This document shows positions 1,956 to 47,700 of a stretch of DNA of 64,000 nucleotides, in pieces. The stretch comes from Anthoceros angustus. Taxonomy: Eukaryota > Plantae > Anthocerotophyta. The DNA lies in contig MU008189.1 of assembly GCA_010909165.1 (NCBI GenBank), positions 558,001-622,000 on the forward strand. Reading direction: 5' to 3'. The translations under genes and the position numbers were made by a program. Each line of letters starts with the position of its first letter. The stretch's first letter is position 1. The notes under the pieces are model-generated. The model was not told the origin of the DNA. It was given only the letters and a program-made list of their open reading frames with translations, and searched no databases.

Positions 1956-4900
1956 ATGTCCTCCAGACTATCTGCCGCTGACATCAATGCGTTAGTAAAC
2001 CGGTTGGGACAATTGACTCTACAACCAATCCCACAAGCATCTGCCATGGCAACTTCCACTTCTAGTACCTCCTCTATACCAACGTTCACATCAGATTTTA
2101 AGGAACGAGATAAGTTCAACGGTACCAGGTACCCAGTCTGGCGCGTCAGGATGAGATCAACTCTGCTTGCTCGTGGAGTGTGGAGTGTTGTGGATGGTTC
2201 CAAGCGGGCGATCCGCAGCGCCTCGCCTCCCACATGATGATCGACTGGGATCAACAAGATTCCATTGCCCTACTGATAGGGGGTCTCGATGCCGACTTGG
2301 TCCCTGACGTGGAATTCCTGACAGATGCCTCCGCGATCTGGAGCCAACTTGAGAAGACATATCAAGTCAACAACATTCTCACCCTCTGTGCTGTTCGACA
2401 GGAGTTCTACGGGCTGAGAATGAGAGAGGGAGATAAAATGGCGACTCATACCAGCAAGTTTCGCCATCTTCGTGGGCACTCACGGCGGCTCCAGATGAAC
2501 GACGTCGACTGGCTGTGCTCACCGCCTTCCCCTTCATACCAGCCTTTTGTGACCTCTCAAAATGGTCCCATTAGAACTGCTCAAGCCGCTGGTAGTGCTA
2601 ACACTCTATCTTTTGAAGAAGTCGTGGGTGCCTTATACCAGGAGGAGCAGAGTCGACTTTCTCACGCTGGTGTCCCTAAGGGCAAAACAGAGAAAGTATT
2701 AGCAGCTGGCTTCAGACCCCAAAAGGGAAAAGGAAGATTCAGACCTGGAAACTCCACTGGGCAGAAAAACACTTCTAAGCGATCAGGCAACTGCAACTGG
2801 TGCGGTATTGCTGGTCACTGGGCAAGAGATTGTCGCAAACGAAAGGCAGGTGAGCCACAAAAGCAATCCAAGCCAAATGCGAATGTTGCTGTAAAGGACA
2901 AGCAATCTGGAGACAATGGGAAAGCTCCAGTTAAGATTCTTACAATCTGCTTATCCAACTCCTTGCACCATGATGACTCCTGGTATCTGGACTCTGGAGC
3001 CACCATGCATATCTGTAAGGATGAACAACAGTTCTTCATCCTCGACTTAACTCCAGTTAAGGAGAAGCATCTGCTAGGAGATGAGCAAAATAAGACTAGC
3101 CTCCGAATTGAGGGACAAGGAAAATGCAAGTTCAGACTCCACGACAACACTGAACTCCTATTGGAACATGTGCTTTATGTACCAAGCATGGCCAAGAACC
3201 TTATGTCCTTGAGCCAACTCCTGAAGTTTAAGACCCTCTATATGCAGGCAGACTGTAACCAATGCTCCTTCTACAAACTATCATCCCCAGATCGATGTGT
3301 TTTCAAGGGCGTACCCAAGAATGACCTGTATAGGTTGGATATCTCTTGCTCACCCTTGGACACCACGCATGCTTACTCCACTGGTGTGCAGCGAAGGAAC
3401 AGCCAACAGGAAGCTACCTTGTGGCATGCACGACTCGGACACGTCAATCGTGCTAAGCTCATTGACATGTCAGTAACAGAATGTCACAGAGAGCCCCTTC
3501 CAAAGTGTTTTAAAGACCTGTCCACTTGTGAAGCCTGCATCTTGGCAAAGCAAAAGGAGTCCCCCTTCCCGAACACACCTGCACACAGGGCTACATCTTT
3601 ACTCGAGTTAGTACATGCGGACATATCGGGAAAGGTGCATGAGCCATCTCTAGGAGGAGCCTTATACTTCTTCACTCTGACAGACGATTTCAGCCGTTAT
3701 ACATGGACCTTTCCTTTGCACCTCAAAAGTGATACATTGAGCCGGTTCCAAGACTGGCTACCAAGAGCTCAGACAGTTCCCTCCTCAAGTTCCTTGAGCG
3801 ACAACGGGCCCAATCCTTTGACACCTATCTGCAGGAGCACGGGATCCAACGTCAGCTTACAGTAAGAAAAAGAACCAGACTCTCCTAGGCATGAACCGGA
3901 GCATGCTCATATGGTCAGGGTTATCGCCAGGATACTGGGCAGAGGCCGTGGTCATAACCACTTACATCCTAAACAGAGTACTTACAAGTTCTGTGCCTGG
4001 CAAAACTCCATATGAAGTATTCTGGCGCCGGAAGCCGAGCCTCCTTCACTTGCGTGTTTTTGGCTCTAAGGCCTATGCGGACATTCCTGCTGAGAGACGC
4101 AAGAAGTTGGAGCCCCGTGCACAGAGCCTGATATTTATGGGTTATGGGGAAACAACGAAAGCATAAAAGCTTTATGACACTGCAACAGGATCCGTGGTTC
4201 TAGCTAGAAGTGTCACATTCCTCGAGCTCCCAGCTCCAGTTCACATAATTGTTTCAGCTTCTGAGGGAGCACACAACCCCGAAGATGTCACATCACCTGA
4301 TATCATCCCAGATGTACCTCCTGGCATTTTCCCAGATGACGAGGGCTGTGGAGGATGATGACCCATTGTTAAATCCTGTTCCTGACCCTGTTCATGAGGA
4401 GCCAAACCCTCCAATACAGGCTAACAATGGTGGTGACACTCCCCAAGCCCCACCAGCAGATGCTGATCATCAGACTATCCCTCAGGATCTTGTTCCTGTT
4501 GCTGAAGGAGCCCCTCGACGATCCACCCGTAATCAACCCCCTCCAGACGAGTGGCAAGAGCCCCGCTACCAATCTGTCGACTTCAGATCTTCTTCATATG
4601 CTACACCTGAAGCCCTGTTTGCTAAATCCTCTGACTTACCAGAAGAACCCACCAACCTTAAACAAGCTCCGGCCCTGAACATCTGCAGTGGAAGGCTGCT
4701 GTGGAGGATGAATACCAGTCTCTTATGAAAAACAAGACCTGGGTTCTAGCAGACCTCCCACCTGGACGTAAGCCTATCTCCTGCAAATGGGTCTTCAAGT
4801 TAAATTGAATGCCCAAGGAGAAGTGGCCCGCTACAAAGCTCGCCTCGTTGCCTGAGGTTTTACCCAGGTTGGTGGACTGGACTATCAGGAGACATTCTCT

Positions 4901-6681
4901 CCTGTAGTGAGGACCCAATCCATTCGAATACTTTTAGCTATGGCAACAGAATATGATCTTGACTTACAACAGATGGACGTTTGCACCGCTTACTTGTATG
5001 GTATACTTGATGAGGAGCTGTATATGCTACAGCCAGAAGCCTACCAGGACCCACAATATCCCAACAAAGTTCTCAGGCTTCTGAAATGCATTTACGGTTT
5101 AAAGCAAAGCGGTAGGGTTTGGTACTACACTATGCATGTTTACCTGATCAGTATCGACTTTGTTCAGAGCTCAGCAGACTCGAATGTCTATGTGCTCTTC
5201 AAAGGATCTTCCCTTGTGCTACTCGCCCTTTATGTGGACGACGTCATACTCGCCACAAACGACCAAACACTCTTGTTAGAGGTAAAACATATGCTCAGCT
5301 CCAAGTTCGAGATGAAGGACATAGGCGAGGTTTTACCCGAGTTGGTGGATCGACTATCGAGACATTCTCTCAGTGAGGACCCAATCCATTCGAATACTTT
5401 TAGCTATGGCAGAATATGATCTTGACTTACGGATGGACGTTTGCACCGCTTACTTGTATGGTATACTTGATGAGGAGTCAGTATGCTCTGACGAAGCCTA
5501 CAGACCCACAATATCCCAACAAAGTTCTCGAGCTTCCGAAATGCATTTACGGTTTAAAGCAAAGCGGTAGGGTTTGGTACTACACTATGCATGTTTACCT
5601 GATCAGTATCGACTTTGTTCAGAGCTCAGCAGACTCGAATGTCTATGTGCTCTTCAAAGGATCTTCCCTTGTGCTACTCGCCCTTTATGTGGACGACGTC
5701 ATACTCGCCACAAACGACCAAACACTCTTGTTAGAGGTAAAACATATGCTCAGCTCCAAGTTCGAGATGAAGGACATAGGCGAGCTGAGGTTTTGCCTTG
5801 GGATACAACTCCTCCGAATTAGGTCAAAGGGGTTAATGATCATACACCAATGCAAATACATCAATGAGATATTAAGGAAGTTTAACCTGGATCAGTGTAG
5901 ACCTTCTACCACACCCTATGCAGCTGGTATCAAACTAACTAACCAGCAGTGCCCTCAAGATGCAGCAGAAACCCATGACATGAAAGATATCCCTTACCGA
6001 CATGATGTCGGAAGCCTTATCTTTGTGGCCAACTGGACACGCCCCGACATCCAATACTCTGTCAGTACAGTGTCCCAGTTCTTGGAAAACCTTGGCCGTG
6101 CACACTGGACAGCGGTTAAACGTATATTCCGCTACCTAAAAGGAAGAATAAAGTATGGACTGTTTTACAGGAGCAGTGGTCAGTCTCAGCTTACCCTCAG
6201 TGGTTTTACGGATGCAGACTGGGCCTCAGATACAGATTCGAGAAGGAGTCTCTCCACATATTGCTTTATACTTGCGTCAGGTGCTGTAAATTGGAGCTGC
6301 AAAAAGCAGTCTTCCATAGCACTCTCCTCGACTGAGGCTGAGTACAAGTCGTTGACTGAAGCATCCAAGGAAGTGGAATGGGAAAGAAGTTTCCTAGGAG
6401 ACTTAGGACAAGACCAACCTTCCCCGACCTTGCTTCTCTGCGACAATATTTCGGCGTTGGAGTTAGTGGCCAACCCAAAATTTCATGCACGAACCAAACA
6501 CATTGAGATACAGCATCATTACATTCGAGACGCTGTTAAGCGTGGAATTATAAAGGTTGATTATATCAGTACTGAAGACAATACAGCCGATATCTTGACT
6601 AAAGGGCTTCCTAAATTAAAGCACTATCAGCACATGGCCGGACTAGGCTTACATGACTTTACAGCCTATTCCAGTCAGTAG
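1956..6681 (+). CDS. Copia gag-pol polyprotein (frameshifted in this sequence)
   Basis: KFNGTRYPVWRVRM (gag N-terminus); CNWCGIAGHWARDC zinc knuckle; WYLDSGATMH protease; LWHARLGH...CEAC; VHAD integrase; QMDVCTAY and LYVDD RT; TDADWA, TEAEY, CDN and ADILTK RNase H; stop at 6681. Confidence 0.92.
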
Positions 6682-11762: not shown

Positions 11763-12069
11763 AATGGCCAGAACGAAGAAGACGAAAACCACTGGCAGGG
11801 CCTCCGCTGTGGCCAAGAACAAGATGACGAGTCCGCAAGTGAAGTTCACTGATATGCGAGCAGCCAGCTCGGAGAGAATGGCCGTACTCAGGGCCAAAAT
11901 GGGAGAGAAATTGGTGCGGTTGAACGCCTCCATGCTGCTCGCCTTCTCCAAGATCCGTCATCCCGTGAATCCAGTGAAGCGCGTTGCGGCCAAGGAGAGG
12001 TCTAAGGAAATGAAGCAAGCTGCCAAAGGTACATTTCAGAAATCGAGCGAGTTCATGTGTGCGACATAA
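11763..12069 (+). CDS. Small basic hypothetical protein (about 101 aa)
   Basis: ATG in a good context (ACAATGGCC); open Lys/Arg-rich frame starting MARTKKTK; no recognisable domain. Confidence 0.4.
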
Positions 12070-12566: not shown

Positions 12567-15141
12567 TCAGTGGTTATCACAACACGAGCATAAACCATCC
12601 TTAAAATGGTGGACTCGGTGTGCATCTCTCACAACGATCTCTCTCCCTTCCAGTCTGGAAATTACCTTACTGCCATTGTGGCAGTCATCGCACATTCTGA
12701 GATCCTTGGTGATGAACAGAGGTGTATTTTCAGGAGTGTTCAGAATTCCAAAAGCAATGGCAAGTTTTTCTGCATGTCCACATAGAAGATCCTCCTTTTC
12801 CAACAGGTCAGTCTCAGGCACATGTCCTTGCTCTTTCATTCGAAGATTCAAGTTCTGCAGCATGGTAGAAGTGTCATCCCTTTGGTCTCCAACAATGAAC
12901 TCATGTACCTTCTGATCGACTTCAATCACAGCCTTGGCAGGTTTCTTCTGAGCTCCAGCCAACTTCCTCAACTTGTCTATTTCCTCTGCTTCTTCTTGTC
13001 TGCCAGCATCAGCATAAATTTTCGACATGAGGACATACCCAGCAGCTTGATGGGGATCGATCTGGACGAGCTGATCAAAACAACGTCTTCCCAGCTCCAC
13101 ATTGCCAAACATGTTGCAGGCACTTAGGAGAGATCTCCACCCCACACAGTCACGTTCAAATGGCATTGCCTGCAACATATTTTCTGCCTCATCCAGCTGC
13201 CCTGATCGAGCAAGAATGTCAACCATACAGGTGAAATGCTCGATACTTGGTACAATTCTATGCTGTTCTGTCATTTCTCTGAACAACTCCTTACCTTCGT
13301 TGATTAAGCCTTTGCGACTGCAAGCAACAAGGAGACAAGTGAAAGTTGTTGCATCAGGTTCAACTCCCTGGCATTGCATTTGCTTCAAGCATTGGATGGC
13401 CATGTTAGAGTCATCATGCTGGGTATAGGCGTTGATAAGAGCATTCCATGTCACCACATCTCTTTGTGAAAGTCTGTCAAACACCTTTTTAGCATCCTCC
13501 AGGCTTCCGCATTTAGCATACATGTCCAGTAAGGCATTAGAAATCAGATCATCTGCTTCCAGCCCTTTTGTCGAAATCTCAGCATGTATTTTCTTGCCAT
13601 CCTGTAAAGATCCTGTGCTAGAACACATCTGGAGCAAGTTACCAAATATAACATTGTCTGGAGAAACACCAGCTTGTTTCATTTCTTGAAAAAGATCAAG
13701 GGCTTCTTGACACTGGCCACGCTGAGCATACCCTGCGATCATTATGGTCCACGTCACCACATCTCTCTCAGACAATCCATCAAACACGATTCGAGCATCA
13801 TCTATGTTGTCGCACTCCACATACATGTTCATCAAGGCACTTCCAACAAACGCATCCCCTCCAAGTCCTCGTTTCAAAATTTGACAATGTATCTGCTTGC
13901 CATCTTGCATGGCTCCAATGCTTGCACATGCCTTTAAAATGCTGACAAATGTTATGAGGTCTGGCAAAATGCCATCTTTCAGCATTCTCGAGTAAAGCCA
14001 AAGGGCGTCATGCCCAAGCCCATGTTGAGCATATCGAGCAATCATGGAATTCCATGTAACCACATTCTTGTTCACTAGTCCATCAAATACTATTTGCGCA
14101 TCCTGCAGGCTTCCACACTGCCCGTACATGTTCATTAGGGAGCTCCCAATGAAGACACTAGAATGGAGTCCCTTGGCAAGGATCTGAGCATGGATCTGTT
14201 TGCCATCCTGCAAGGCTCCTATGCTGCTACACGCTTTCAGAATGCTAACATATGTAACGTCATTTGGTGACAAGCCCTCCTCTAGCATCTTTTTGTACAA
14301 CTCCAGGGCTTTTGCACCAAGCCCATACTGAGCATATCCTGAAATCATCACATTCCAAATAACAACATTCCTTGTGGACAACCTTTCAAATACTTGGTGG
14401 GCGTCCTCCAAACTCCCACAGTTTGCATACATGTGTATCAGAGCACTGGCAACAAACAGATTGGACTCAGCCTGACAGTCCAAGACATCCTCATGGACAA
14501 GCTTGCCTGATGTCAGATCTCCTTTACTAGCACAGGCTTTCAGGACTGCCACAAAGATATAGTCATTGGGTTCTGTGGTCGAGTCCCGCATTTTCTGATA
14601 CAGCTCTATGGCTCGTTGAGCGTGTCCACGATCAGCATGTGCTGAGATCAGTGAAGCCCATACGAACACATTAGGGGCATGCAGCTTACTGAAGACCCCC
14701 CTAGCTTCCAGCAATTTTCCATGAGAAGCATACATGCGGATGAGGTGGTTCCCTAGAAAAGTATCCACCTCATGCCCACTCCGGGCAGTGAGAGCATGGA
14801 TGTATTTGCCCGCTTCCAGATCCCTCTTTGTAATGCTCTCCTTCAGAAGCCGGTACAGCATATCTGCAGATATGTATGATCCTCCCCTGCCCAAGAAGTC
14901 CAAAGCTTGGACCGCCTCACGCAGCCGCCCTTCCTCCAGTAACCTGCTCCACTCTTCTGACACCCCGACATACTCCACATGGCTGCCACTTCCTGACACT
15001 CTGCATGTCCAGAGCAGCTGAAACAACGTGAGAACCTCAGCAACATGGGCCACCCATTCACCATTATACAGAGACGAGCCTCAGTTTGGATACCTGACAG
15101 AACCCCGATAATCTCCAACATCTGTCGAGGAGAGTGCCCAT
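12567..15141 (-). CDS. PLS-class PPR protein with E1-E2-DYW:KP domain (candidate U-to-C organellar RNA editing factor)
   Basis: Repeating P-L-S triplets; C-terminus has KKPAKAVIEV, HAEKLA and CDDCH, and ends CSCCDNH. The main exon probably starts at the acceptor at 15017. A small upstream exon 15141-15094 splices in frame (tentative). Confidence 0.95.
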
Positions 15142-15923
15142 GAACAAATAGAATGTCCTCCCTCACCCTTCGACTGGCTCGGTGAAGGCCTCAAGCTCTC
15201 CGTTGCTGTGCTGTTCACGTGGTCCGCACACCCGAGGTCTGTCTGTGGCGATCACCCATTGTCAACTGCAAACTGAGGACCAAGCAACGCCTCATTCTCC
15301 TGCTGGAGCATTACCACATAGTTAAGCAGAACCCACAAAAAGGCCCGAGCTAGAGTCCCACCTCCTGCACAGTCTTGATCCACCAGCGCGAAGGCTTCGC
15401 AAAAAATTCTGCCCTCAGTCCCTCTTTTGAAGCAACGGCATCTGCAACACCATCTTCAACCATGAAAACCCAAAATCCTCGCAGTTCTCGACCACAAACA
15501 AGATCACTCACCACAGCTGGTACCAAAGCAATGCCTTCCGATTGAGGAATCCAGAGTCAGATCACGCCTCTCCGAATTCTCCCTACTGCTGGATTTGCGA
15601 TTTCGGAAGCATAGGTTAACCAGGCTGCCAGCCGCCGGCGTCCTCCTCTTCATGATCACTTCCTACCGGATTGCAGCTTTCGCAGGTCATATAATCTGGC
15701 CGGTTCGCAGCTCACCCTACTGATCCTACTTTATGGACCACCCGGAGCAAATGTGACAGCGTCGCTGTGACACGGATGTGTGGATCCAGCCTTAGTTCAG
15801 GTGGAGGGTGGCAGCCATTACACGCGCTGCGATGGAGTTGTCGTGGTGGGTGTTTGTGTGCTTCCCTCACTGAATTACCCGGTTCTTGTTAAACCTTATT
15901 GGCTGCCAAGAACAAAGGAAGAT

Positions 15924-16931
15924 ATGGCTACAACGACGACAAGTGCGTGCAGAACCTGCCTCTATGTACGAGCCTCCACGCAGTCTTACCTGCATGTCTC
16001 ACGGACATCCTTATCCCCTTCCCAAATTTGTTGCTCCAGCTCTCTCTCCTGTGCTTTGGCAAGCAAGCGTTCATCTCGGGTACTCTCTGGCCGGGGAAGG
16101 GTGGTGTTCCAGGTGCGGGATGGGCTTGATCCAGCATCAGATCAACCGCCCTCCAGCCGAGCAGATGCGGTGCAGCAGGCCGGAGCATCACTGGCTGCAC
16201 TCTTGGAGAAATCTCTCAAGAAGCAGGGACCAGCCACGGTGAAGCAGCGGAAGGATCAGAGGCAGGTGCGGCTTAGGGTAGAGATCCCGGAGCTGGACGA
16301 CTCTCCCGCATCTCTTCTAACCCTGTCGCTGGATCTCGTGTCAGCCTTTGCGTCAGGGAAGAAGGGCCTTCTCACAGATATCGCCCTTTGCTTTGCAGAC
16401 TCTTCTCTCCTGGAGCTTGCCAGGGAAGGGCGTTCTTCCACTAGTTCTGTTCCCCGACTTCATTTTCTCAGTCTGGCGGAGGCCGCTGCTGTACCGCAGG
16501 CGTGCTCTTGCGTTTTTGTGGTTGGCCCACAGTTGCTACATGCGCCTGCTATTGCAAAGATTGCCACGCAAGCTGGAACGAGGCCAGTTGTTGCTGTGAA
16601 TCCGTTCTGGCCAGAAGAGGAGGATGCATACGCAGCTGGGAAGGCTCTGCTGTCTTCCTTCGAAGTTGCCTACTCCTTCACGGCTATATGTATTCAGGGG
16701 TTTTTCAGCAAAACAGAGGGGGTCGTGATGAAGCATGCCAAGAGTGGAGCTCCTAGCGGGAGACCTTGGCTCATTTATGTGAAGGAAGGTGGCAAGTACA
16801 AGTGTGTGAGTAGTCTGAAGTCCCGCCCTGGTGCAGCTGAGCTTGAGACTGCCCTTTACAATGTCATTGCAGCCAATTCCCCTATCACAAAGTCTGTTAG
16901 CTTTCTGAGAGGGTTGGTAACTAGGCAATGA
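15924..16931 (+). CDS. DUF1995-like plastid-targeted protein (intronless, about 335 aa)
   Basis: Ser/Thr/Arg-rich transit peptide from ATG 15924; RLRVEIPEL, VVAVNPFW, FEVAYSF, PWLIY and RPGAAELETAL resemble the plant/cyanobacterial DUF1995 family. Confidence 0.75.
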   Translation: MATTTTSACRTCLYVRASTQSYLHVSRTSLSPSQICCSSSLSCALASKRSSRVLSGRGRVVFQVRDGLDPASDQPPSSRADAVQQAGASLAALLEKSLKKQGPATVKQRKDQRQVRLRVEIPELDDSPASLLTLSLDLVSAFASGKKGLLTDIALCFADSSLLELAREGRSSTSSVPRLHFLSLAEAAAVPQACSCVFVVGPQLLHAPAIAKIATQAGTRPVVAVNPFWPEEEDAYAAGKALLSSFEVAYSFTAICIQGFFSKTEGVVMKHAKSGAPSGRPWLIYVKEGGKYKCVSSLKSRPGAAELETALYNVIAANSPITKSVSFLRGLVTRQ

Positions 16932-17720: not shown

Positions 17721-18166
17721 AGACTACGTTGAGAACTTCCGATTTGCCGAACTACATACAATTCATGCTTGCTTCAATGGCCAGCATGATCTTGGTTACC
17801 GAAATGTAACATCCTTGTTCAGGGGACCACAATCCAAACGGAAATGCGTCACAACTGTATGTCGTCCTTGGCTTTCGTGGAGGCTGCCTTCAAATGGCTC
17901 TGCCCGAGTGTACACTGTACAGACGTATATATGTCGAACGGACCGGGAACAAGAACACAAGTCCCAAATCCCGACTCTTGGCCAACATGCTGGAGGCCAG
18001 ACTGGATACCTGCTATTCTGGATACACACTATCGCCGTGACTGTGCCGGGAACGTCGTGGAAACTGTCGTCCACCTGGACGCCCTCTAATCCCCTCCCAT
18101 GTCCCCCCGTCGATGCCTCGTGGGCAGCAGAAGCCAGGCCTTGCATTGTTTTGAACGTTTGCAGCC

Positions 18167-20080
18167 ATGGAGATGGCAGAATACGTGGCCCAGGCTCTGA
18201 AGGACTGGTTGTTGTACCTGGTGCTGGGACTGGCGGCGCTGGCTGTGTTGCTGCAGCGTTGGAAGCAGAGCAGCAGGCAGAAGGAAAGGCTACCGCCTGG
18301 TCCGCCAGGGGTGCCAGTGTTCGGCAATCTTTTCCTTCTTATAACTTCCAGCCATCCGCACCAGGAGCTACACCGCTTGGCTCGACAGTATGGCCCCATC
18401 ATGTCATTGCGGCTGGGGTCGAGGCTGGGGATCGTTGTGTCCTCTCCGGAGATCGCCAAAGAGGTGCTCAAGACTCAGGACCGGGAGTTCGCAAACCGCC
18501 CCTTCACGACTGCCAAGGATGCCATGGGGTACGGGGAGAGCACCATGGGCTTCGCCTCCTACAGCCCACACTGGAGATTTCTCAGGTCAATAGTGAACGC
18601 ACATTCACGATTCTGATGATCGTGCTGGTTCAATGGGACCTGTTCCAAAACCGGGTCGATCGAATTCGAAGCACCTGCTCTAGTCCATACATGTATTGCT
18701 TCGGCTAACGCTGAATGATTGATTGGAACGCAGGAGGGTTGCAAATTCCGAGCTGCTGAGTGCGAAGCGGGTTCAGCAGTTCCAGTCTGTGAGGGAAGAG
18801 GAGTTGTCCAGAATGGTGAAGTCCATCCTGGAGGACAGTCAGAGGTCTCCCGTGGTGGACGTGCAGCAGAGGGCGTTTTTTCTTACCATGAACGTAATGA
18901 CGCGTATCTTGATGAGCAAGAGGTTCTTCTCTTACACCAAATCCTCTCAATCCGACAAAGGCGATGAAGAGGTATGTATGTGATTGATCCCAATTCACTC
19001 ACGAGTCTCCCTCACCCGCGGTGATGTCATTCTGAGCCTGCGAATTCTTGGGCAGGACTTGGCCGAAGAATTTAGAAGTCTCATCGAGGAACTGTTTTTC
19101 CTGGGTGGAGTTTCTTTGATAGGAGATGTCATCCCATCCTTGGGCTTCCTGGACCGGATTATGAACTATGAGAAGAGAATGCGCCGAGTTCACCAGCGAT
19201 TTGACTCCTTCCTGACAACTGTGCTCGAGGAACATAGGCAGACCAGAAATGATCAAGAAGCCAGGAACTACGTCGATATCTTGCTCTCCCTCCCTGGAGA
19301 AGACGGCGCTCCACATATGGAGGAGGTTGTCATGAAGGCACTGGCCATGGTATGCCTCCTGTTAGTAAGCTTACCTTCAGTGCAGTCCAGCATGTTTGAT
19401 ACATTAGTACACTGTGCAATGTGCCCTGAACATCGTTTGTGCATGGCGTGCAGAGCGTGATCACTGCTGGCACGGACACATCTAGCATCACAGTGGAGTG
19501 GGGCTTATCAGAACTCCTCCGAAATCCCCAGGCTCTACAGAGAGTGTACCAAGAGCTGGACGAGGTTGTAGGGAAGGAGAGGGTGGTCACAGAATCCGAT
19601 CTTCCAAACCTTCCCTACTTGCAGGCTGTGGTAAAGGAAACATTCCGCCTTCATCCAGCCGGGCCGTTACTGATTCCACACGTAAGCAGCGAGGCTTGCG
19701 AGGTGGCAGGCTTCCATATCCCTCCCGGAACCACCACCTTCGTGAACGTGTGGAGTATCTCTCGGCAGCCCGACGTGTGGGAGAATCCGCTGGAATTTCA
19801 GCCTGACAGATTCCTCAACAGCGACGTCGACGTGCGAGGCCAGCACTTCCAGCTGCTCCCTTTTGGCTCCGGCAGACGATCTTGCCCTGGTATACACATG
19901 GGGCTTGCTATGGTGCAATACTCTCTGGCGAGGCTGGTGCACAGCTTTGATTGGTCCCTGCCACAGGGTCAGGCACCTGATGAATTGGATATGAAGGAGA
20001 AGTTCGGCCTAACCTTGCCTCGAGCCAAGCCGCTCCTGGCTAATCCTCTGCCTCGTCTACCTCCCCACCTTTATGAGTGA
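18167..20080 (+). CDS. Cytochrome P450, CYP71 clan (A-type), 4 exons (18167-18585, 18734-18971, 19056-19349, 19454-20080)
   Basis: TM anchor, LPPGP hinge, AGTDTS I-helix, ETFR, QPDRF and PFGSGRRSCPG heme motif. All three GT-AG introns restore the frame. Confidence 0.96.
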
Positions 20081-20830
20081 GTCATGAGATCTGCAGAGCA
20101 GGTGAAGATATCTCCGAAGGACAGTCAGGATGGGCAGCAGGTGATGGCAGTTCATGCGGCGGATTCTGAAGGCTATCCTGTTTGGCTGGCTGAGGTGGTA
20201 CTGTACTACCTGTACTCGTTCACTATGGGCACCAAGCCAGCACCACATCACAGATCAGTGTTCTTGTACAGGTCCGTGTGGATAAGTTGTTATGCAACCG
20301 TCAGTTTGTGATCACCATATTAGGAGCTGGAAGTGAGGGCATTTTCGGATGCCATGGTTGTAGAACATGAACCCTGTGTGGCAAGTCACTCACTCTTCAT
20401 GTAAATAGGAGTTCGTGTGTAATTAAGCAGGAATCCTGTTCGGATGGCTCACCCGTTCACATGCTTCACATGCTAGGCCAGTGCTTGCTGATGCTGGCTC
20501 TTTTGTTTGTCTGGGCGAAGCAGGTACAGCGCTTGCAAATACTGGCCGGGCATTTTCTAGGCTCTAAACAAAATCAGCTCCATCTTACTATCAACTCAAG
20601 AATGTGCACATTGTTTCGGTAGTGCCAACTGGAGTGTCTGGGCGAAGCAGCTTCAGTGCTTACAATCTCAAATGTTGTATTAGGACTTCCACACCCATAA
20701 ACCCTAAACCGCGACCCAGAGCAATCAATAGTCTGGCGTATACGTGCCAAATGGGAACAAAAATTAGACACTTGCAATCTGACGAAGCTTCGAACAGAGC
20801 GTTCTTGTTGTTTCCACGAATGCTGCTAAT

Positions 20831-22709
20831 CTATGCATCCAGTTTTTCTGAGATGATACGCAGTAAAAGACTCGTCAGCTTGGCCCGATACTCTTCAGCC
20901 TCAAAAGCGGAGTCTTCATCCTCGGAGGAGTCCTCATCTTCTGAATCTTCATCTTCAGATGTTTCGCTCAGTTCTTCCTCGCTCACATCATCTTCTCGAG
21001 TCTGAGGGAAAAAGCTGGCTTGCGACATCTCGGCGAACTGGTTGGGATCTCTCAGAAAATCTGTAAAGGCAATCCAGGGTCAGAGGAAGGCCATTCCTAG
21101 TTGACAGCTCGCAAAGCTCTAAAGTCAGGAAACGCCGTACCTGGCAGGCGACTACGGTTAGACCCCCTCAATCTCACCAACATGGTCGGAACTCTTGCTT
21201 TCCGAAACACCCACAGCCTGCGATTGTCCAACGACCACAGAAATCCGCCATGCCTAGCCACCTCCACCAGGGGAAATCCGAAGGTCCCAGCCTCCCCGTC
21301 GTGAGACCATCCACAGCATCATAAATGCTCTAGCCATTCCGGCACTCTCCCAGGGGATCATCGACATACTCAGCTTCGTGAATCCTCTCGCCATTCCGGA
21401 AGTTTGAGACGATAGATTTCTCAGTGAAACGCAGCTTGCGAGTGTCCACCACCATTACCGAGTGATCTGAATAGTGGTCACCTTCAGATGTTTCGCTGAG
21501 TTCTTCCTCGACCGTTCTGACACCAACTCTTCGAGCCCGAGGGAAAAAACTGGCTTGCGACATCTCGGCGAACTGGATGGGATCTCTCAGAAAAGCTGAG
21601 TAAGGCTTTCCAAGGTCAGAGGGAGGTCTACTTGACAGCTCGCAAAGCACGCACATCAGGAAACTTCGTACCTGGCAGGCGACTACTGTTCGGCCCCCTC
21701 AATCTCACCAACAGTGTCAAAGCCCTTGCCTTCCGAAACACCCACAGCCTGCGATTGTCCAACGACCACAAAAATCCTCCATGCCTCACCACCTTCACCG
21801 TGAAGAAATCCGCAGCTCGCAGGCTCCCCGCCCGGATATCATCCACGGCATCGTGAATGCTCTCGCCATTCCGGAAGAAACAGGCGATGGATTTTTGAGT
21901 GAAACGTACAAGGGTTTACTACCAGCGTCATGTTATCCGAACTCATGCTTCCTTGCGATCAATTCCTACAATTCCGAGCCGCGCTTTAAACAGCCACCGT
22001 GGTCCCTGTCACCTGGCATTGCGATCGGATCGACACGAGTTAGCCATGACCACCGTACGCCTGACAACCAGGAGGGAGCAAGGATGCACATGACAAGCTC
22101 AGAAGCCTTCTAGGCATTTGCAAGGCACTGTAGCAGGCCCTGCACAGGGGGCGCTCAGAGGCTGAAAAGCCCCAATCTGTTGGCCATCAGTGACCATCAG
22201 ACTCCATACAAGTACTGTTACATACATTTCAATGGCTACTACAACGAAGTTGCTGTCATATATGTAGGCGGATAGAAACCCTAAGAAATGCACACAAGGG
22301 TATCACCCGCTGGAGCTGATGCCAAGGGAATGAGAGACTCCCTGTACAGACTAAAGGCCACCAGAACGCGCTCAGGAACAGTTCAAAATCTCAGAGGTTG
22401 AGAGGCCCTTTACAGGCACCTAAGACCTATCCCGCAATTCAGACACTCACCAATTTTCTCAACACCGAACTCCGGGGTTCTGAGGAAAACACTGCATAAG
22501 GCAGATGAACAGATGGCCAGGAGCAAGATACTGAAATCCAAGGATGCTTGCACACACAGCTCATGCAGTGAAAACCGCATCATGCACACTCTAATCCCAG
22601 GCAACAGCAGCATACAATTCAGGTCAGGTAACCGCCGGTGTCTGAGGAGCCGGAAATCAATCCATAGCGAGCGGAGGAAAGCCATATGTCGATCCTCTCT
22701 GCTGTACAT
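20831..22709 (-). pseudogene. ParB/Srx-like domain gene, copy B (two tandem domains; disrupted or mis-sequenced)
   Basis: Domain 1 from ATG 21946 (DDIRAGSLRAADFFTVKVVRHGGFLWSLDNRRLWVFRKA) runs into domain 2 (VVDTRKLRFTEKSIVSNFRNGERIH), then an acidic tail and LRIISEKLDA*. Upstream exons are homologous to copy A, with one TAG and frameshifts. Confidence 0.7.
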
Positions 22710-22823
22710 ATCCCGGTCCCTACAGTTCTGTTAGGGTGTGGAGGAATTCCGTTAAGGAGGGTGACGGGGCCATACTGCCTGTCCTTTGTTCATTAGTCAT
22801 TGACTCCGCTCTGAGCACTACTC

Positions 22824-23165
22824 TCTGATTTCGAGGAGCCACTCTTTCCCTGGGCGTAAAGGCACCACCTGCTGGGCATCTCATCACAGCGTTCTCATCA
22901 CTTGCAGGGGTGATGAGTAGAAGACTGTTCTGATGTCGGCCGTCGCCTATCCATCACAAACAAGTAATGGCTAAGCGTGTCAGCCCTCGGGCTCGGTTCC
23001 GCACGGTTTCCCTCGGTGCCCGATGACTGACACGCTTGGCCATTACTTGTTTGTGATGGACAGGCGACTGCCTGATTTCGAGGAGCCACTCTGCCACTGG
23101 GCGTAAGGGCACCCTCTGCTGGAGCTCTCATCACAGCTTTCACACGTGCAGGATGAGTAGAAGAC
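22824..23165. repeat. Pair of roughly 100-bp imperfect direct repeats
   Basis: CTGATTTCGAGGAGCCACTCT...GATGAGTAGAAGAC at about 22824-22926 and 23072-23165. Confidence 0.85.
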
Positions 23166-23182
23166 GGTACGTTTCTTCCTTG

Positions 23183-23298
23183 CTTTCATGACCTGTGACT
23201 TGATGATCCCTCACCCTTGATTTCATGACCTGTGACTTGATGATCCCTCACCCTTGCTTTCATGACCTGTTAGTTGATGATCCCTCACCCTTGCTTTC
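23183..23298. repeat. 37-bp tandem minisatellite x3
   Basis: Unit CTTTCATGACCTGTGACTTGATGATCCCTCACCCTTG repeated head-to-tail without spacers. Confidence 0.92.
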
Positions 23299-24762
23299 GT
23301 ACTCAGCAATAAAAACCTTCCTGCTTGACGGTTGTGCAACTGCCCCATCGTTCAACAATTAGCAGTCCCTCCGTCTCGGGTGGGGGAAGAACCTGTGAAC
23401 ATAGGAGGCATCTCATCACCAAAAGCTGCGTCGTCGACGGAATTCGTTTCCCAAAACACTCTTCCTACTGTGCAGTCGCTTCTTTTAACATCGACTTAAT
23501 TTCCTGACTGTTTGCTTTGGCCGGAGGTGATGGTCAAATGACGAAATAGCGTCACACATGCTGGCGACTGCACATCTCTCTATGCGTCGGTGTCAGTCAT
23601 AAATCGTCCAATTCACTCTGGGAGCAAGCGAGTACTCCCTTGTCAGTAATTGCTTGCCAAAACCAAGTCCAACCTGCAACCGACTGCTTCGACCGCTCTG
23701 CATTCCAGTGGCGAATTGAATTCGAGATGCCACCTCGCTGTTGCCAGTCATTCGTGAAGGAGCTGCGGTACAAAAGATTTCATCCCGCATCCACGGGATG
23801 AAATTTGTGCAACTGCGCAGTTGGCAAGGGAAGTGTTTCCAGCAAGCTCATCTTCCAGCGCTGACACTCGCACTGGCCCAGAGTGAAAGCCGGGGCTGCG
23901 CAAATTTCGCATACCGGCTGGATCTCGATTTTTACTGTCCAGGCCTTATCCGTGACAGGCTTGCTTGTATGGCAGCTTCCGGCTGGGTGCCACCGCCCCC
24001 TCCGCCGGCGGATAGGATATCCATGGGGTTATCCACATTCCAGTTGTTCGCGCAATAACGGGCACTTTACTCGTTGAGGAAAGTGTACAACCGAGAGCCC
24101 ATAGCATAGGCCATCTTTGCGTGGTGAGCCAGACCTGACCAGTGGATGCTTCCAATCCAAAAAGCGTAGTGGCCTCGGATATTACAAGATGCCCATTGTT
24201 CATCACCCGACGAGCCCCTCCTTGAACCTGCAACCAAATACGTTGTGCAAAGGCACATCTAAAGAAAGATGTTCACTCTTGTGCTCCTGCTCAGACGTAC
24301 ATAAAACACAAGACGGGCACCCGACTGCTTCAAAGAAGCCATTATACCGGTCGGAATTCGGAAGAGAAGCCTGGAGCATCCGCCAGAGAGTGGCTCTATG
24401 TTTTGCGACAATACCTGGGCTTTTCCGAACCAACGTGAGGATCTTGAAGGATTCACCTGTAGTCGAGGGGCAAGAATTAAGGCTACGCTTCTTGCTGGCT
24501 ACATAAGAGTTCATCACCGATAGCTTGGGATTTTCAAACCCAAACAAGACCGTCATCACAGTAAGTAAGACCCACACCCGAGTGTGAAATACCTCGCTGG
24601 ACAAGACGTCTTGGGATGTTCTTTCGGCTTGGAACCACGACGCTGTGTTTAAAAGCAATGAGCAGTCAGGCGTTTACAAGGCAAACGGGAACAAAAATCA
24701 AACACTTGCAATCTGACGAAGCTTCAGAGCGTTCTAGTTTTGTCTTCATGGATGCTGTTGAT

Positions 24763-26270
24763 CTATAAATCTAGATTTCCAGAGTTAATATGTTGTAAAA
24801 GCTGCGCAAATCGTCCACGGAACTCTTCAGCATCAAACTCGGAGACCTCATCCACCTCATCCTCGGAGGAGTCCTCATACTCGGAGGACTCCTCATCTTC
24901 TTCATCTTCAGATGTTCCGCTGAGTTCTTCCTCGACTGTTCTGAGATAATCTCCTCGAGTCCGAGGGAAAAAGCTGGCTTGCGACATCTTGGCGAACTGG
25001 TTGGGATCTCTCACTAGAGCTGAGTAACGCAATCCAAGGTCAGAGAGCGCATTCCTACTTAGCTCGCAAAGCAAGACAGGACACGTCATACCTGGTAGGA
25101 AACTAGTGTTTCCACGGCGTGACCCCTTCACTCTCACCGACATGGTCCGAACTTTTGCTTTCCGAAACACCCACAGCCTGCGATTGTCCAACGACCACAG
25201 AACTCCTCCACGCCTAACCACCTCCACCGTGGGAAAATCCGCAGGTCGCAGCCTCCCCGCCCGGATATCGTCCACAGCATCATGAATGCTCTGGCCATTC
25301 CGGAAGTACGAGGCGATGGACTTCTGAGTGAAACGCAAATCCCGAGGGTCCACCACCATCGTCATGTTCTCCGAACTCATTGCTTCTTTGCAATCGGTTC
25401 CCGCAATTCCAAGCTGCGCTTTCGACACCACCGTCAGGCCGCAGATATGATCTTCGCATTAGGGCTCACCCTAAGCGCGGAAGTCATGAACCGTGGTTCC
25501 TGTCACCTGGCATTACGACTTGATCGACATAGGTTAGCCATGACCGAACAGCTGACAACGAGGAGGGAACAAAGGCGCATATGACAACCTCGGAAGCCTT
25601 CCAAGCATTTGAAAAGCATTGTGATAGGCCCTCCCTGCACAGTGAGTACTCAGAGGCGGAAACGCCCGAACTCGAAGCTGAAACGCCCGAAGTCATCTGA
25701 CTTCCGAGAAGTACTGCCACATACAGTTCAGTGGCTAATACAATGGTGGTGCTGTCATACATGTAGGCTGCTGGAAGCCCCAAGGGATGAACAGACGGGT
25801 ACCAGACACTGGGGCTGTAGCCAAGGGAATGACAGACTCCCAGACCACGGGACACCAGAATGCTCACAGGACTCCAGATGATACAGATCATAACCTCGAA
25901 GTTGAAAGACCTTTCACAGGATACCTATCAAGCAATTCAGACAGTCATCGATTTTCTCGGCCCCGGACTCCGGAATGTTGAGAAGAGAATTCCAGGAGGC
26001 AGATGAAGAGATGGCCAGGGACCAGGTGCTGAGATCCAATGACGCTTGCCCACACAGCTCATACAGAGAAGTTGTCACGCCAAAGAACACAACTGCGTCG
26101 ATACCCACAGTTCCAATTCCAGGCAACAACAGCCTACAGTTCAGATCAGGTAACAATGTCGGAGTAACCACAAACCAGCCATACCACGCGGAAGAATAGC
26201 TTGCCTCTCGCCTCTCGGTTGCACATCGCCCTAGAATTCATGCGGCTTACTCCTAGCATACATATGTGCA
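24763..26270 (-). CDS. ParB/Srx-like domain protein, copy A (last exon 25385-24763 intact; putative upstream exons about 26270-25925 and 25770-25507)
   Basis: Intact ORF VDPRDLRFTQKSIASYFRNGQSIHDAVDDIRAGRLRPADFPTVEVVRRGGVLWSLDNRRLWVFRKA plus an acidic tail. GT donors at 25924 and 25506 are conserved in copy B, and the 264-nt middle exon keeps phase 1. Confidence 0.72.
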
Positions 26271-27155
26271 GGAGCAGCAGTAAAAATCTCCCACATTCGT
26301 TGTTGCTAGCGCAGCTGCCACCACAATGGTATTTATGTCCAGGACAGGAGATGGTGAGACGTTTCAGGAGTAATCCAGACAGTATCCAGCCACAGAATTC
26401 ACGACATTGCAAGCCTTGGCTCATAGAGTTCCCATCAGCAATTCAGCATTTCCCTCCCTAAAAACAATGATATCCCGTCTCGGATGGGGGAAGAGCCTAA
26501 CTTAGAAAGCATCTCATCAGCAAAAACTGCGTCCTCGACAGAGCTCGTTTCCCAAGACACTCTTCCTCCTGTACAGGCGCTTCTTTTAGCATCTAATTAA
26601 TTTCCTGACGCTTTGCTTTGTTGGGAGCTGCTGGTCGATGACTGGATGGCGTCACACACCTGCTGTCGAGGCACTGGCTGACAAGTCTCGATGCCTCGAT
26701 GTCAGTCATGAATCATCCAATCCTCACTTCTTCATCCGCCAGAAAGAAAAGGGGCAGGCAGACGTCTGTGCACTGCTTTGCTTTCAGGGCATAGTCGGAA
26801 TCGGCCGCCAACAGAACGGAAAACACTGGCAAAGGCGGTGGCAAAGAATCCGGTGGTGGCGGAAAGAGATGAACTGGATGAATTCTTGATTCTCACGTTT
26901 TGCTGCAGCGCTGGGAGCATGGCTCGCAGGGCAATTTCTTGGTTCGAAAATTGACGCCCTCGCCTTGCCTGCTGGAAACCAGCACGTTCTGCACCGAAGG
27001 TAAGAATTCTCGGTCTGGACTCCAATTACTCCCGAGCTACCTCAGAAAGTCCAATCTGCACCCGAATGCTCCCACCGCTCCGTTCCCCGTGGCGAATTGA
27101 GTTCGAGATGCCACCTCGCCGTTGCCAAGTCATTGGTGAAGTAGCTGCGGTGCAA

Positions 27156-44700: not shown

Positions 44701-47700
44701 GAGAGATATTCCACATTCCATCAACCTATTAGGGTGCTATGGAGTCACAATTGACAACCCGGTGGTCGGGACTGAGGAGACCAGGACGGAGGTCGAGGAA
44801 CAAGAAGTAGAGGTGGCTGAGCCGGGGAGCGACGCATCTGGACAAACTTCGGAGGGGTGCGAGGAGGGTGTCTCACGTTTTACCTCAGACGACCTATTCC
44901 GGGAATGGGGAATGCGCGAAGGAGAACCAAGACAGCCGGAGGAAGGGTTCGGCATCACATCCGCGCCGGTGGAGAGAGAGTGGCATGCACGGATGAGGTC
45001 AAGGATGTGGAAGTGTTGCCCGGCAAGGTCCTTAAGTTTTCGAGCAGGATGAATGCAGACTTGGAAAGGGGTATGAAACATGGAATTTATCCACGTTTTG
45101 CTTTTGACGCATATGAAGGGTATACCGAGGGAGTGGGGAGCACAAGATTGATCTCGAGCCGGGTGCCGTGCCAGTCCGGATACCGCAATACAAGCTAAAT
45201 CCAAAGTATTCTGAAGGTAAAGGAACAATTGGAGCTCTACTGCGACGCATATATCCTATTGTGACATCGGAGTGGGTAGCCCCAATTGTGGTGGTTCCCA
45301 AAAGCGTAAGGGAAGATACGGTCCGCCAGATTGGAGGAAGTTAAACAAGGTGACCAAAAAGACCATTACCCGCTTCCATTCATAGACAACATAATCGGAC
45401 TTAGTTGCAGGAGAATGGTCTACCTGCTCGGATGGGTATTCGGGTATAATCACCACATCTCGTGGAGAGTGATTGGCCCCCAATCCTTCACTCTGATCGG
45501 GAACCTATGCCTACAAACGGAGTGCGTTCGGATTAACAGGGCACCGTGATCCTTCATGCGACTGTCAAGATTTTCAAGGAATACCTTAGGGACTTCATGG
45601 AGGTCTTCCTGGATGACTTCGTGTTTGGAGCAACAAAGATCACCTCAACCACCTTCGCAAATGTCCGAACGGTGTCACAGACAATTGTGTCTACATCCCG
45701 AGAAATGTTATTTCGGCATGCCGAGGGTATTTTGTTGGGGCACCGCATTTTGCGGGGGATAGAGGTCGACCGGATAAGGTCAAAATCATTACCGCCTCAA
45801 GCCACCTACCAAGGAGCTTAGGGATTCCTCGGAATGGTAGGCTATTATCGAAGGTTTGTGAAGAATTTCTCCGGAAGGCGCTCGCTTCGTGCTTCGCAAG
45901 GACCGGAGTGGGAATGGACGCAAAAGAGAGGAGGCCTTCAATGATCTTCGAACCACCCTGATCACAGGACCCACGCTGCGGGGACCGGACTAGACCAAGA
46001 AATTCCACGTGTTTGTAGACGTTTCGGCCTATGCAATCGGTACCATTCTAAGCCAAAGGGATGACAAGAAGCATGATTACCCAATCTATTATGCAGGGAG
46101 ACAGCTCACTGACGCAGAAAAGAAGTATACCACCACCGAGAGGGAGGCGCTGGGAATGGTATACTCGGTTCGCAAGTTTCGTCACTATTTGCTATCCTAC
46201 GAGTTCGTCTTCCATGTGGACCACTTCGCCCTCAAACACCTGGTAAACAAAACTGACTTGTCTGGACGCATAGCAAGATGGATCCTACTCCTGCAGGAAT
46301 TCACGTTCACGGTGGAGACGAGAGGAGGTAGTAAACATGTGAATGCAGATTACATTTCGAGAAATGGGGAATGCGAAGGAGAAATTCCCATTCCATCAAC
46401 CTATTAGGGTGCTATGGAGTCACAATTGACAACCCGGTGGTCGGGGAGGAGACCGGACGAGGTCGAGGAACAAGAAGTAGAGGTGGTCGAGCCGGGAGCG
46501 ACGATCCGGACAAACTTCGGAGGGTGCGAGGGTGTCTCACGTTTTACCTCGACGACCTATTCCGGAATGGGGAATGCGAAGGAGAACCAAGACATGGAGG
46601 AAGGGTTCGCATCACATCCGCGCCGGTGGAGAGAGAGTGGCATGCACGGATGAGGTCAAGGATGTGGAAGTGTTGCCCGGCAAGGTCCTTAAGTTTTCGA
46701 GCAGGATGAATGCAGACTTGGAAAGGGGTATGAAACATGGAATTTATCCACGTTTTGCTTTTGACGCATATGAAGGGTATACCGAGGGAGTGGGGAGCAC
46801 AAGATTGATCTCGTGCGTGCCCCGGATACCGCAATACAAGCTAAATCCAAAGTATTCTGAAGGTAAAGGAACAATTGGAGCTCTACTGCGACGCATATAT
46901 CCTATTGTGACATCGGAGTGGGTAGCCCCAATTGTGGTGGTTCCCAAAAGCGTAAGGGAAGATACGGTCCGCCAGATTGGAGGAAGTTAAACAAGGTGAC
47001 CAAAAAGACCATTACCCGCTTCCATTCATAGACAACATCGGACTTAGTTGCGGGGAGAATGGTCTACCTGCTCGGATGGGTATTCGGGTATAATCACCAC
47101 ATCTCGTGGAGAGTGATTGGCCCCCAATCCTTCACTCTGATCGGGAACCTATGCCTACAAACGGAGTGCGTTCGGATTAACAGGGCACCGTGATCCTTCA
47201 TGCGACTGTCAAGATTTTCAAGGAATACCTTAGGGACTTCATGGAGGTCTTCCTGGATGACTTCGTGTTTGGAGCAACAAAGATCACCTCAACCACCTTC
47301 GCAAATGTCCGAACGGTGTCACAGACAATTGTGTCTACATCCCGAGAAATGTTATTTCGGCATGCGAGGGTATTTTGTTGGGGCACCGATTGGGATAGAA
47401 GTCGACCCGGATAAAGTCAAAATCATCACCGCCCTCAAGCCACCTACCACACTGAAAGAGCTTAGGGGATTCCTCGGGATGGTAGGCTATTATCGCAGGT
47501 TTGTGAAGAATTTCTCCAAGGCAGCCGCGCTTACAGAGTTGCTTCGCAAGGACCAGGAGTGGGAGTGGACGCAGGAACGAGAGGAGGCCTTCAATGACCT
47601 TCGAACCACCCTGATCACAGCACCCACGCTGGGGCCGATCGAACAAGAAGTTCCACGTGTTTGTAGACGTTTCGCCTATGCAATCGGTACCATTCTAAGC

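Follow-up and report, generated by a model that had tools for sequence, protein, structure and literature searches.

The locus described here raises the question of what a plant gene is whose product resembles the tips of bacterial polymorphic toxins, from where it was obtained and what its product could do. It lies on the minus strand of a 64,000-nucleotide stretch of contig MU008189.1 of Anthoceros angustus, which we call the window (the whole stretch of DNA that was analysed, with positions counted from its first letter). According to the best explanation overall, to which we attach a probability of about 0.6, the gene is a descendant of the Tox-ParBL1 toxin domains and its product would act on nucleoside triphosphates (NTPs). 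It would encode a small cytosolic protein of 181 amino acids, of which the first ~125 residues would be a stand-alone Tox-ParBL1 domain, a divergent branch of the ParB/sulfiredoxin (ParB/Srx) superfamily with which bacteria arm the C-terminus of their Rhs and pretoxin-HINT (PT-HINT) polymorphic toxins. Vertical inheritance with repeated local duplication and decay would have left one intact gene and a dead two-domain paralogue 3.4 kb away. The gene does not represent a new kind of system but adds a member to a family that was defined in silico in 2012; what is new here is an intron of 72 nt and the joining of a very basic domain to an unusually acidic tail.

The ParB/Srx fold that the original prediction had proposed was borne out by two AlphaFold2 (AF2) models, one of the window protein and one of the complete domain of a lycophyte homologue (73-sequence alignment), which in Foldseek and in exhaustive structural alignment match almost only ParB/Srx structures. 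Over residues 1-88 the model of the window protein has a strand-helix topology and block-mean predicted local distance difference test (pLDDT) values of 70-95, mostly ~90. The Foldseek matches listed for it in the PDB, 50 out of 50, were to ParB/Srx proteins (ParB, pNOB8 ParB, Noc, KorB, sulfiredoxin, PadC, SbnI, SerK, Atu1540 or similar), and an exhaustive VIA search found 16 of 48,161 representative chains at Z of at least 2, the ten best being ParB/Srx and led by the Arabidopsis sulfiredoxin 6ky4 (Z 7.8, 77 residues aligned), with PadC at Z 7.0 (82 aligned). In the lycophyte model (pLDDT 94.3, predicted template modelling score 0.88) the C-terminal third of the domain is ordered and packed, with helices at 92-99 and 103-109 and a strand at 117-119. 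Its listed Foldseek matches were again ParB/Srx proteins in 50 of 50 cases, and in the VIA search 12 chains reached Z of at least 2, the ten best of them ParB/Srx; Atu1540 was the best (Z 7.7, 108 aligned), followed by sulfiredoxins, SerK, KorB, PadC, SbnI, Spo0J and Osa. Both models hold the core of the superfamily, that is a strand, a helix, a beta-hairpin and a helix starting at the phosphate-binding motif. In the window model D65-N66-R67-R68 stands at the start of helix 66-74, after strands 52-57 and 60-63, and on the residue equivalence of Zhang et al. 2012 this D-N-R-R would correspond to the superfamily P-motif GxxR.

The window protein had no Pfam match at E up to 1, PF02195 included, and the tip-bearing bacterial toxins had no ParB_N match (E 0.001-0.01). 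For the domain itself no Pfam or NCBIfam family emerged when the window protein and the bacterial tips were scanned, and PDB sequence searches with the single protein and with two profiles returned chance matches only, to the acidic tail, Nup53 or a beta-lactamase.

The resemblance to toxin tips proved to be true sequence homology, found by profile search, to the C-terminal tips of bacterial Rhs and PT-HINT toxins. When a profile built from the plant proteins was scored against 1.84 billion representatives clustered at 50% identity, 3,419 of them matched with an E of at most 1e-3, and 1,079 with an E of at most 1e-10. In the bacterial toxins the domain forms the extreme C-terminus, with homologues at E ~1e-17 to 1e-25 and Nocardioides, Cupriavidus and Massilia among the named carriers. 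It is directly preceded by PT-HINT in P0110, P0135, P0247, P0249, P0250, P0252 and P0271 and by Rhs_assc_core in P0098, P0137, P0154 and P0200, all of the latter above the TIGR03696 cutoff. PT-HINT and RHS proteins are also among its fold neighbours in the ESM Atlas. A Thermomicrobiales metagenome-assembled genome (MAG) carries the domain as a stand-alone open reading frame (ORF) of 101 codons. The bacterial loci look like toxin cassettes: a small gene follows directly downstream in all four of them and overlaps the toxin gene by 4 nt in three. None of these four downstream genes matches the SUKH or Imm44 Pfam models, one being a DUF7660 gene, and comparison ruled out that the four form one family. 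In the plant gene the domain begins at residue ~5 and is accompanied by no RHS, HINT or secretion domain, and its neighbours are a decayed paralogue and retroelement fragments, with no adjacent immunity gene. Since both a trafficking region and an immunity gene are missing, the plant gene is a stand-alone descendant of the toxin domain and not a toxin system.

Some further observations were made at the bacterial loci. A metagenome contig (L005, 1-8146) is a textbook example of a polymorphic-toxin locus: a full Rhs toxin, whose tip is Tox-REase-9, and its small partner gene stand ahead of an orphan cassette of PT-HINT and ParBL1 tip with a 138-codon gene overlapping by 4 nt, and further on there is another YD-shell fragment with a small partner. 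The partners of 137 and 138 codons in L003 and L005 look related, have no Pfam family and are candidates for a new immunity family. In the Thermomicrobiales MAG (L001, 6010-6560) the ParBL1 ORF is overlapped, in another frame of the same strand, by a DUF7660 protein (E 2e-23), and DUF7660 may be an immunity protein for a ParBL1-type toxin.

The family to which the domain belongs was named by Zhang et al. 2012 (Biol Direct 7:18; PMC3482391), who defined Tox-ParBL1 by a predicted ParB fold, an N-terminal Ser/Thr and an [NT][RT][RT] motif of which the last two residues are mostly R. They placed it on toxins of several secretion systems that carry HINT, RHS and filamentous haemagglutinin repeats, with the MafB-class toxin NGK_2271 of Neisseria gonorrhoeae as type member and with Imm-SUKH or Imm44 immunity proteins as partners. 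Stand-alone forms in Viridiplantae, metazoans and fungi were already listed, and an acquisition by eukaryotes from polymorphic toxins, independent of that of sulfiredoxin, was proposed. The window family matches this description in its RF(T/S)Q and N-R-R motifs, in its occurrence at the tips of RHS and HINT toxins and in its stand-alone plant, metazoan and fungal forms, and we found no feature in it that contradicts the description. T18 of RFTQ is conserved in at least 90% of close relatives, with Ser at this position in some bacterial tips, and N-R-R is invariant or nearly so across relatives. In the 73 sequences, which come from bacteria, plants and animals, the N, R and L of DNRRL are invariant and the columns P10, Q17, I20, F24, V55, D66 and R69 nearly so. 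We regard the assignment to the Tox-ParBL1 family and to the ParB/Srx fold as highly probable.

The claim of an undescribed system does not stand, since the family matches one defined in 2012 with plants already among its hosts. Nevertheless that article contains no plant gene structure, clade analysis or function, and it was the only article in which our literature search met the term Tox-ParBL1 in the relevant sense. The statement that no characterised land-plant member is known agrees with the literature, in which we found none. A family of 3,419 cluster representatives is yet without a solved structure, a Pfam or NCBIfam model or a biochemical study.

What the domain does may be approached from its superfamily. 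We suggest that N66-R67-R68 together with the segment P12...Q19 (P...RF(T/S)Q) would bind an NTP, which the domain would then hydrolyse or whose phosphate it would transfer. The junction of strand and helix at which the motif lies is the position of the phosphate-binding GxxR motif in ParB, sulfiredoxin and ToxB. ParB binds and hydrolyses cytidine triphosphate (CTP), the canonical ParB being a CTP-gated switch, and sulfiredoxin and SerK use adenosine triphosphate (ATP). ToxB is a ParB-fold toxin of contact-dependent inhibition (CDI) with a GNHR P-motif that binds and hydrolyses ATP; its R108A variant is inactive, and the wild type kills Nicotiana benthamiana cells in an arginine-dependent way (Kaljevic et al. 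2026, bioRxiv 10.64898/2026.05.05.722872). ToxB and the window family belong to the same superfamily, have no DNA-binding or dimerisation domain and carry GNHR and DNRR, respectively, at the same strand-helix junction, and the bacterial cousins of the window protein share with ToxB the role of polymorphic toxin tip. They differ in that ToxB was found through PF02195, which misses the window family, and in that ToxB is rare and sits on CdiA whereas the window family is large and sits on Rhs and PT-HINT toxins; moreover ATPase activity has been demonstrated for ToxB and is inferred for the window family. Since ToxB, a sister ParB-fold ATPase toxin, kills plant cells, the role of the copy that plants have themselves inherited becomes a timely and testable question, for which Marchantia Mp6g06960 offers a tractable model of the family.

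Sulfiredoxin, for example that of Arabidopsis (6ky4), ranks with the best structural matches (Z 7.8 and 7.5) and is, like the window protein, a single-domain eukaryotic protein, known to use ATP. It has no detectable sequence similarity to the window protein, in which the catalytic Cys-His-Arg is replaced by Asn-Arg-Arg: the stretch equivalent to the sulfiredoxin motif F-G/S-G-C-H-R reads S-L-D-N-R-R, without cysteine. Moreover sulfiredoxin represents a separate eukaryotic acquisition according to Zhang et al. 2012 (PMC3482391). With ParB, Noc and KorB, which are CTP-gated DNA clamps, the window protein shares the N-terminal nucleotide-binding fold and two P-motif arginines (GERR versus DNRR), but it has no helix-turn-helix, C-terminal dimerisation domain, ParA-binding motif or PF02195 match. 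Atu1540 (2hwj), a ParB-like protein from structural genomics, is the best match of the full domain but has no sequence similarity to it, and it adds nothing on the mechanism.

Several points weigh against a Tox-ParBL1 descendant that acts on NTPs. Z-scores of 7-8 are middling when taken alone, and the case for the fold holds because almost all matches of the predicted structures are to ParB/Srx proteins and two independent models agree. The identity of the family was drawn from its published definition and not from a direct comparison with NGK_2271. The acidic tail is nearly unique to the window gene and so cannot be a general part of how the family works. The one RNA run listed in a search for expression contains next to nothing of the window, and our literature search found no experimental work, biochemical or other, on any Tox-ParBL1 member, bacterial or eukaryotic. 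The NTPase activity is inferred by superfamily analogy and from the position of the motif, and we would put NTP-binding or NTP-hydrolysing chemistry at roughly even odds. Finally, Zhang et al. 2012 (PMC3482391) favoured nuclease activity for the ParB-type toxin domains.

If this last view, the main rival to ours, is followed, the domain would be a DNase or RNase, with nucleic acid as the substrate to be cut and without turnover of free nucleotides. The very basic nature of the domain (pI 11.5) suits nucleic-acid binding, and Osa, a ParB/Srx structural match, is described as an ATPase/DNase. The predominance of nucleases among polymorphic toxin tips was the argument of Zhang et al. 2012 (PMC3482391), although the same authors state that the original claim of a ParB nuclease rested on wrong assumptions. 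ToxB, the only ParB-fold toxin studied in depth, is an ATPase without DNA-binding capability, and the invariant columns include no typical acidic metal-binding motif. We consider a nuclease unlikely and NTPs the better candidate substrate.

The charge of the protein is unevenly distributed. The spliced domain of 121 residues has an isoelectric point (pI) of 11.49, with 23 K/R versus 11 D/E, and the last 60 residues (coding ~24766-24945) one of 4.05, with 23 D/E versus 3 K/R. Reaching 47% D/E over 40 residues, the tail is the most acidic among the 152 family members with tails, only five of which have tails with at least 40%. It is tempting to speculate that in this protein the basic domain is masked in cis by its acidic tail. 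Likewise speculative is a role in biotic conflict or in controlled cell death, hinted at only by the toxin ancestry and by the birth-and-death dynamics of the locus, and we hold a function in defence or cell death to be doubtful. It would be a long shot to suppose that non-flowering land plants have kept a bacterial warhead as an active, NTP-consuming executor of cell-autonomous defence or programmed cell death. In this species the acidic tail, as a mimic of an immunity protein, would then restrain it in cis, and in relatives a C-terminal membrane anchor would restrain or localise it; if true, this would be a eukaryotic toxin with a built-in antitoxin, descended from polymorphic toxins.

The patchy spread in eukaryotes stated in the original prediction was confirmed by homologue searches. 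In plants, members were found in the liverworts Riccia fluitans, R. sorocarpa, Marchantia polymorpha, M. paleacea and Calypogeia fissa, the moss Sphagnum, the lycophyte Diphasiastrum complanatum and the gymnosperms Ginkgo, Picea sitchensis and Cryptomeria japonica. No angiosperm occurs in the best 120 of 207 matches, from a search that spans proteins of 113-359 residues. Domain trees were built on an alignment of ~115 columns and bear on the plant grouping, not on the number of eukaryotic acquisitions. In these trees 31 of 31 named plant rows, including the window protein, stand on one side of a supported branch (SH-like support 99 with 238 rows; SH-aLRT 96 with 89 rows under a mixture model), and the bivalve sequences are another such group. 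That all plant rows form one clade fits one old acquisition of the plant domain followed by vertical inheritance, and the plant genes can be seen as one old clade that is seemingly missing from flowering plants. A family that is lineage-specific and possibly horizontally acquired, as had been suggested, does not agree with a supported clade that reaches from liverworts to conifers.

A recent transfer from bacteria to this plant lineage alone is contradicted by the sequence tree and appears hardly credible. The bacterial toxin tips are clear homologues, and one Thermomicrobiales ORF is 51% identical over 65 residues, but the closest relatives of the window protein are other land-plant proteins (up to 55% identity) and the tree separates the bacterial tips from the named plant sequences, all of which fall into one group. 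In addition the gene holds a spliceosomal intron and has ordinary plant genes around it, encoding a pentatricopeptide repeat (PPR)-DYW protein, a DUF1995 protein and a cytochrome P450.

The retention of one clade across liverworts, mosses, lycophytes and gymnosperms could also be explained if the plant protein were a tamed, non-toxic nucleotide-gated switch or adaptor, often membrane-anchored in relatives and with a housekeeping or signalling function that has nothing to do with conflict. The CTP gating of canonical ParB proteins is in line with this, and so are the tails: a strongly hydrophobic C-terminal segment recurs in 13 of 69 plant-clade members and in 27 of 83 others with tails, the Marchantia proteins have clear transmembrane tail anchors, and ten non-plant members have CaaX-like ends. 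These features suggest that the eukaryotic domains have repeatedly been tethered to the cytosolic face of a membrane, and many eukaryotic members are predicted to be membrane-anchored. However the tail survey found neither a hydrophobic anchor nor a CaaX end in the window protein, so that the window gene departs from this recurrent theme. The apparent absence of angiosperms from the 120 best matches also speaks against a tamed switch, and highly variable tails and local duplications with pseudogenes would be unusual for a core function. We find it distinctly unlikely, and a Tox-ParBL1 descendant acting on NTPs remains our preferred reading.

Some other members of the family have unusual architectures. 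Two or three tandem domains occur in many of them, as in the dead paralogue at the window locus. Outside the plant clade the C-termini of P0218, P0226, P0237 and P0239, as well as of P0220 and P0232, are of two kinds, a Cys-rich CaaX-like motif (..CCCIIL) and a hydrophobic tail anchor. In P0015, P0093, P0116, P0131, P0144 and P0203 (rotifer, chytrid and eukaryote-like) a C-terminal ParBL1 domain follows several unnamed repeats (..LNGRQK.LP.. then ..F.DGS..W..) that have no Pfam match. Of the long proteins P0045 of Calypogeia fissa (1154 residues) and P0118 (1423 residues), one combines the domain with a Tf2-type SH3 and a chromodomain, perhaps because the gene model was fused to a retroelement, and the other has an N-terminal DnaJ domain.

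The ORF listing for the window gives the intact gene as a minus-strand ORF of 222 codons (24763-25431), opening with GTG at 25431 and carrying RFTQKSI near its N-terminus and LWSLDNRRLWVFRKA mid-frame. Its first ATG, at 25380, is preceded by an in-frame stop and would give 205 codons if the transcript were unspliced; the starts of homologues fall within a few residues of the same point. An exact look-up of the 205-residue product found no record of the same sequence. Compared with 13 homologues this product has an insertion of 24 residues after position 96, for which the DNA begins with GTATG and ends with TCAG and across which the AF2 pLDDT is below 50. The corresponding segment measures 72, 76 and 80 nt in the three paralogous copies, and in those of 76 and 80 nt the conserved downstream frame (..RDP.QFA.MSQASFFP..) continues the upstream one only when splicing removes the segment, read-through leading into stops. 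Since the homologues lack exactly these 24 codons and the frames of the paralogues are kept only by splicing, the segment would be a phase-1 intron, and there is good evidence from these alignments that it is real. The coding sequence is uninterrupted in the orthologues of Diphasiastrum and Marchantia, with which the spliced window protein aligns without a gap at the intron site; the intron is therefore, on this comparison, a young one gained in the lineage of the window gene.

This intron accounts for part of what had been taken for a conserved linker after each domain copy. The rest belongs to the domain itself and forms its C-terminal third, which closes with the strand FFPR(V/T)RG, kept from bacterial toxins to plants. 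Likewise a Glu/Asp/Ser-rich tail follows the intact copy and copy 3, as had been predicted for each of the copies, but not copy 2, where the tail is cut short by an internal duplication.

The three related domain copies and their tandem duplication, both part of the original prediction, were recovered from the ORFs and the repeat search as the intact gene starting at 25380 and two broken copies (Table 1). The repeat structure of the locus is far beyond chance. A segmental duplication of ~3.43 kb relates 20720-23535 to 24654-26636, the start-to-start spacing of the repeat families D1-D9 and D11 being mostly 3424-3499 nt (3101 for D9, 3934 for D11), and a further internal duplication of ~531 nt lies within unit A. 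Over the domain the three-copy repeat families have 64-88% identity in most cases, the intact copy having 67% in family D1, and the three copies share an identical LWSLDNRRLWVFRKA motif. Copy 2 is frameshifted because, relative to the intact gene, it lacks 5 nt immediately ahead of the RFTQ motif. Both extra copies being broken, the locus amounts to one intact gene and one decayed, once two-domain paralogue, and with two of its three domain copies decayed the family can hardly be called expanding here. Local gene clusters seem to exist also in Cryptomeria and Riccia sorocarpa, where members on one contig bear consecutive locus tags. The window locus displays birth-and-death dynamics together with a rare acidic-tailed variant.

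Table 1. Features of the Tox-ParBL1 locus (window positions).
Feature	Positions	Strand	Details or evidence
Coding sequence of intact gene, first ATG to stop	24763..25380	-	181 amino acids spliced, 205 with intron kept
Exon 1, N-terminal two thirds of putative Tox-ParBL1 domain (RFTQ..I; LDNRRLW residues 64-70)	25092..25380	-	alignments, AF2 model
Predicted phase-1 GT..AG intron, 72 nt	25020..25091	-	homologue and paralogue comparison, AF2 pLDDT
Exon 2, first part, C-terminal third of domain: two short helices and final strand FFPRTRG	24925..25019	-	homologue alignment
Acidic tail rich in Glu, Asp and Ser, with a short amphipathic helix-like stretch at its end	24766..24924	-	composition
Decayed tandem paralogue with two domain copies	20831..21946	-	sequence, ORFs, repeats, intron analysis
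Domain copy 2	about 21672-21946	-	frameshifted near N-terminus
Domain copy 3	about 21141-21455	-	internal duplication, stop codon, frameshift
Introns of decayed paralogue	21596-21671 and 21061-21140	-	intron analysis
Last exon of decayed paralogue, with acidic tail	20831-21060	-	intron analysis
Duplicated unit A of segmental tandem duplication	20720..23535	.	repeat families D1-D9, D11; flank alignment
Duplicated unit B, holding intact gene	24654..26636	.	repeat search, flank alignment

With two of the three domain copies already broken, with hardly any of the stretch in the one RNA run listed, and with retroelement fragments on its flanks (the zf-RVT match at 24203-24658 and copia and Ty3-like elements), the intact ORF might itself be a silent relic in a decaying, unexpressed duplicated gene pair. 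Against this, the spliced frame of 181 codons is open, its GT..AG sites are intact and all family-invariant residues are kept. The ratio of nonsynonymous to synonymous substitution rates (dN/dS) between locus copies is below 1, at 0.29-0.65 on small samples of 42-75 codons, a range that leaves out the pair of copy 1 and copy 3 exon 1, and points to constraint, past or present. A silent relic is in our opinion very unlikely.

Two candidate features gained no support. Exons at 25386-26270 (-) coding for an extra N-terminal domain of ~170 residues were not supported by homologues, Pfam or flank comparison: none of 164 homologues aligns past window position 25404, the region has no Pfam match on the minus strand, and it can be aligned to 21950-23300 with a mean column identity of 74%, although numerous indels of lengths not divisible by three separate the two. 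A duplicated non-coding flank, 5' untranslated region or promoter seems the more likely identity of the region. Weak tblastn matches at 11833-11952 and 59108-59356 were spurious once translated.

The surroundings of the locus consist of the ordinary plant genes named above and of copia- and Ty3-type retroelements. An intronless gene of 828 codons at 12567-15053 (-) encodes a PPR protein that has an E motif and a DYW deaminase domain. The ORF at 15780-16931 (+) carries a DUF1995 domain, and a cytochrome P450 (E 1e-65) is represented at 19439-20080 (+) by its C-terminal half, the ORFs 17815-18708 and 18984-19460 being possible further exons of it. Directly downstream of the intact gene a 151-codon ORF (24203-24658, -) has a weak zf-RVT match (E 1e-4, below the Pfam cutoff) and is probably a fragment of a non-LTR (long terminal repeat) retroelement between the duplicated units. 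At 2180-6681 (+) there is a copia-type LTR retrotransposon with gag, Pol beta-barrel, pre-integrase and RVT_2. The region 30000-62000, with a long positive GC skew (to 0.33) and a positive AT skew on the plus strand and a GC content of 0.50-0.59, contains a Ty3-type reverse transcriptase-RNaseH ORF at 47200-47973 and probably consists of nested LTR retroelements.

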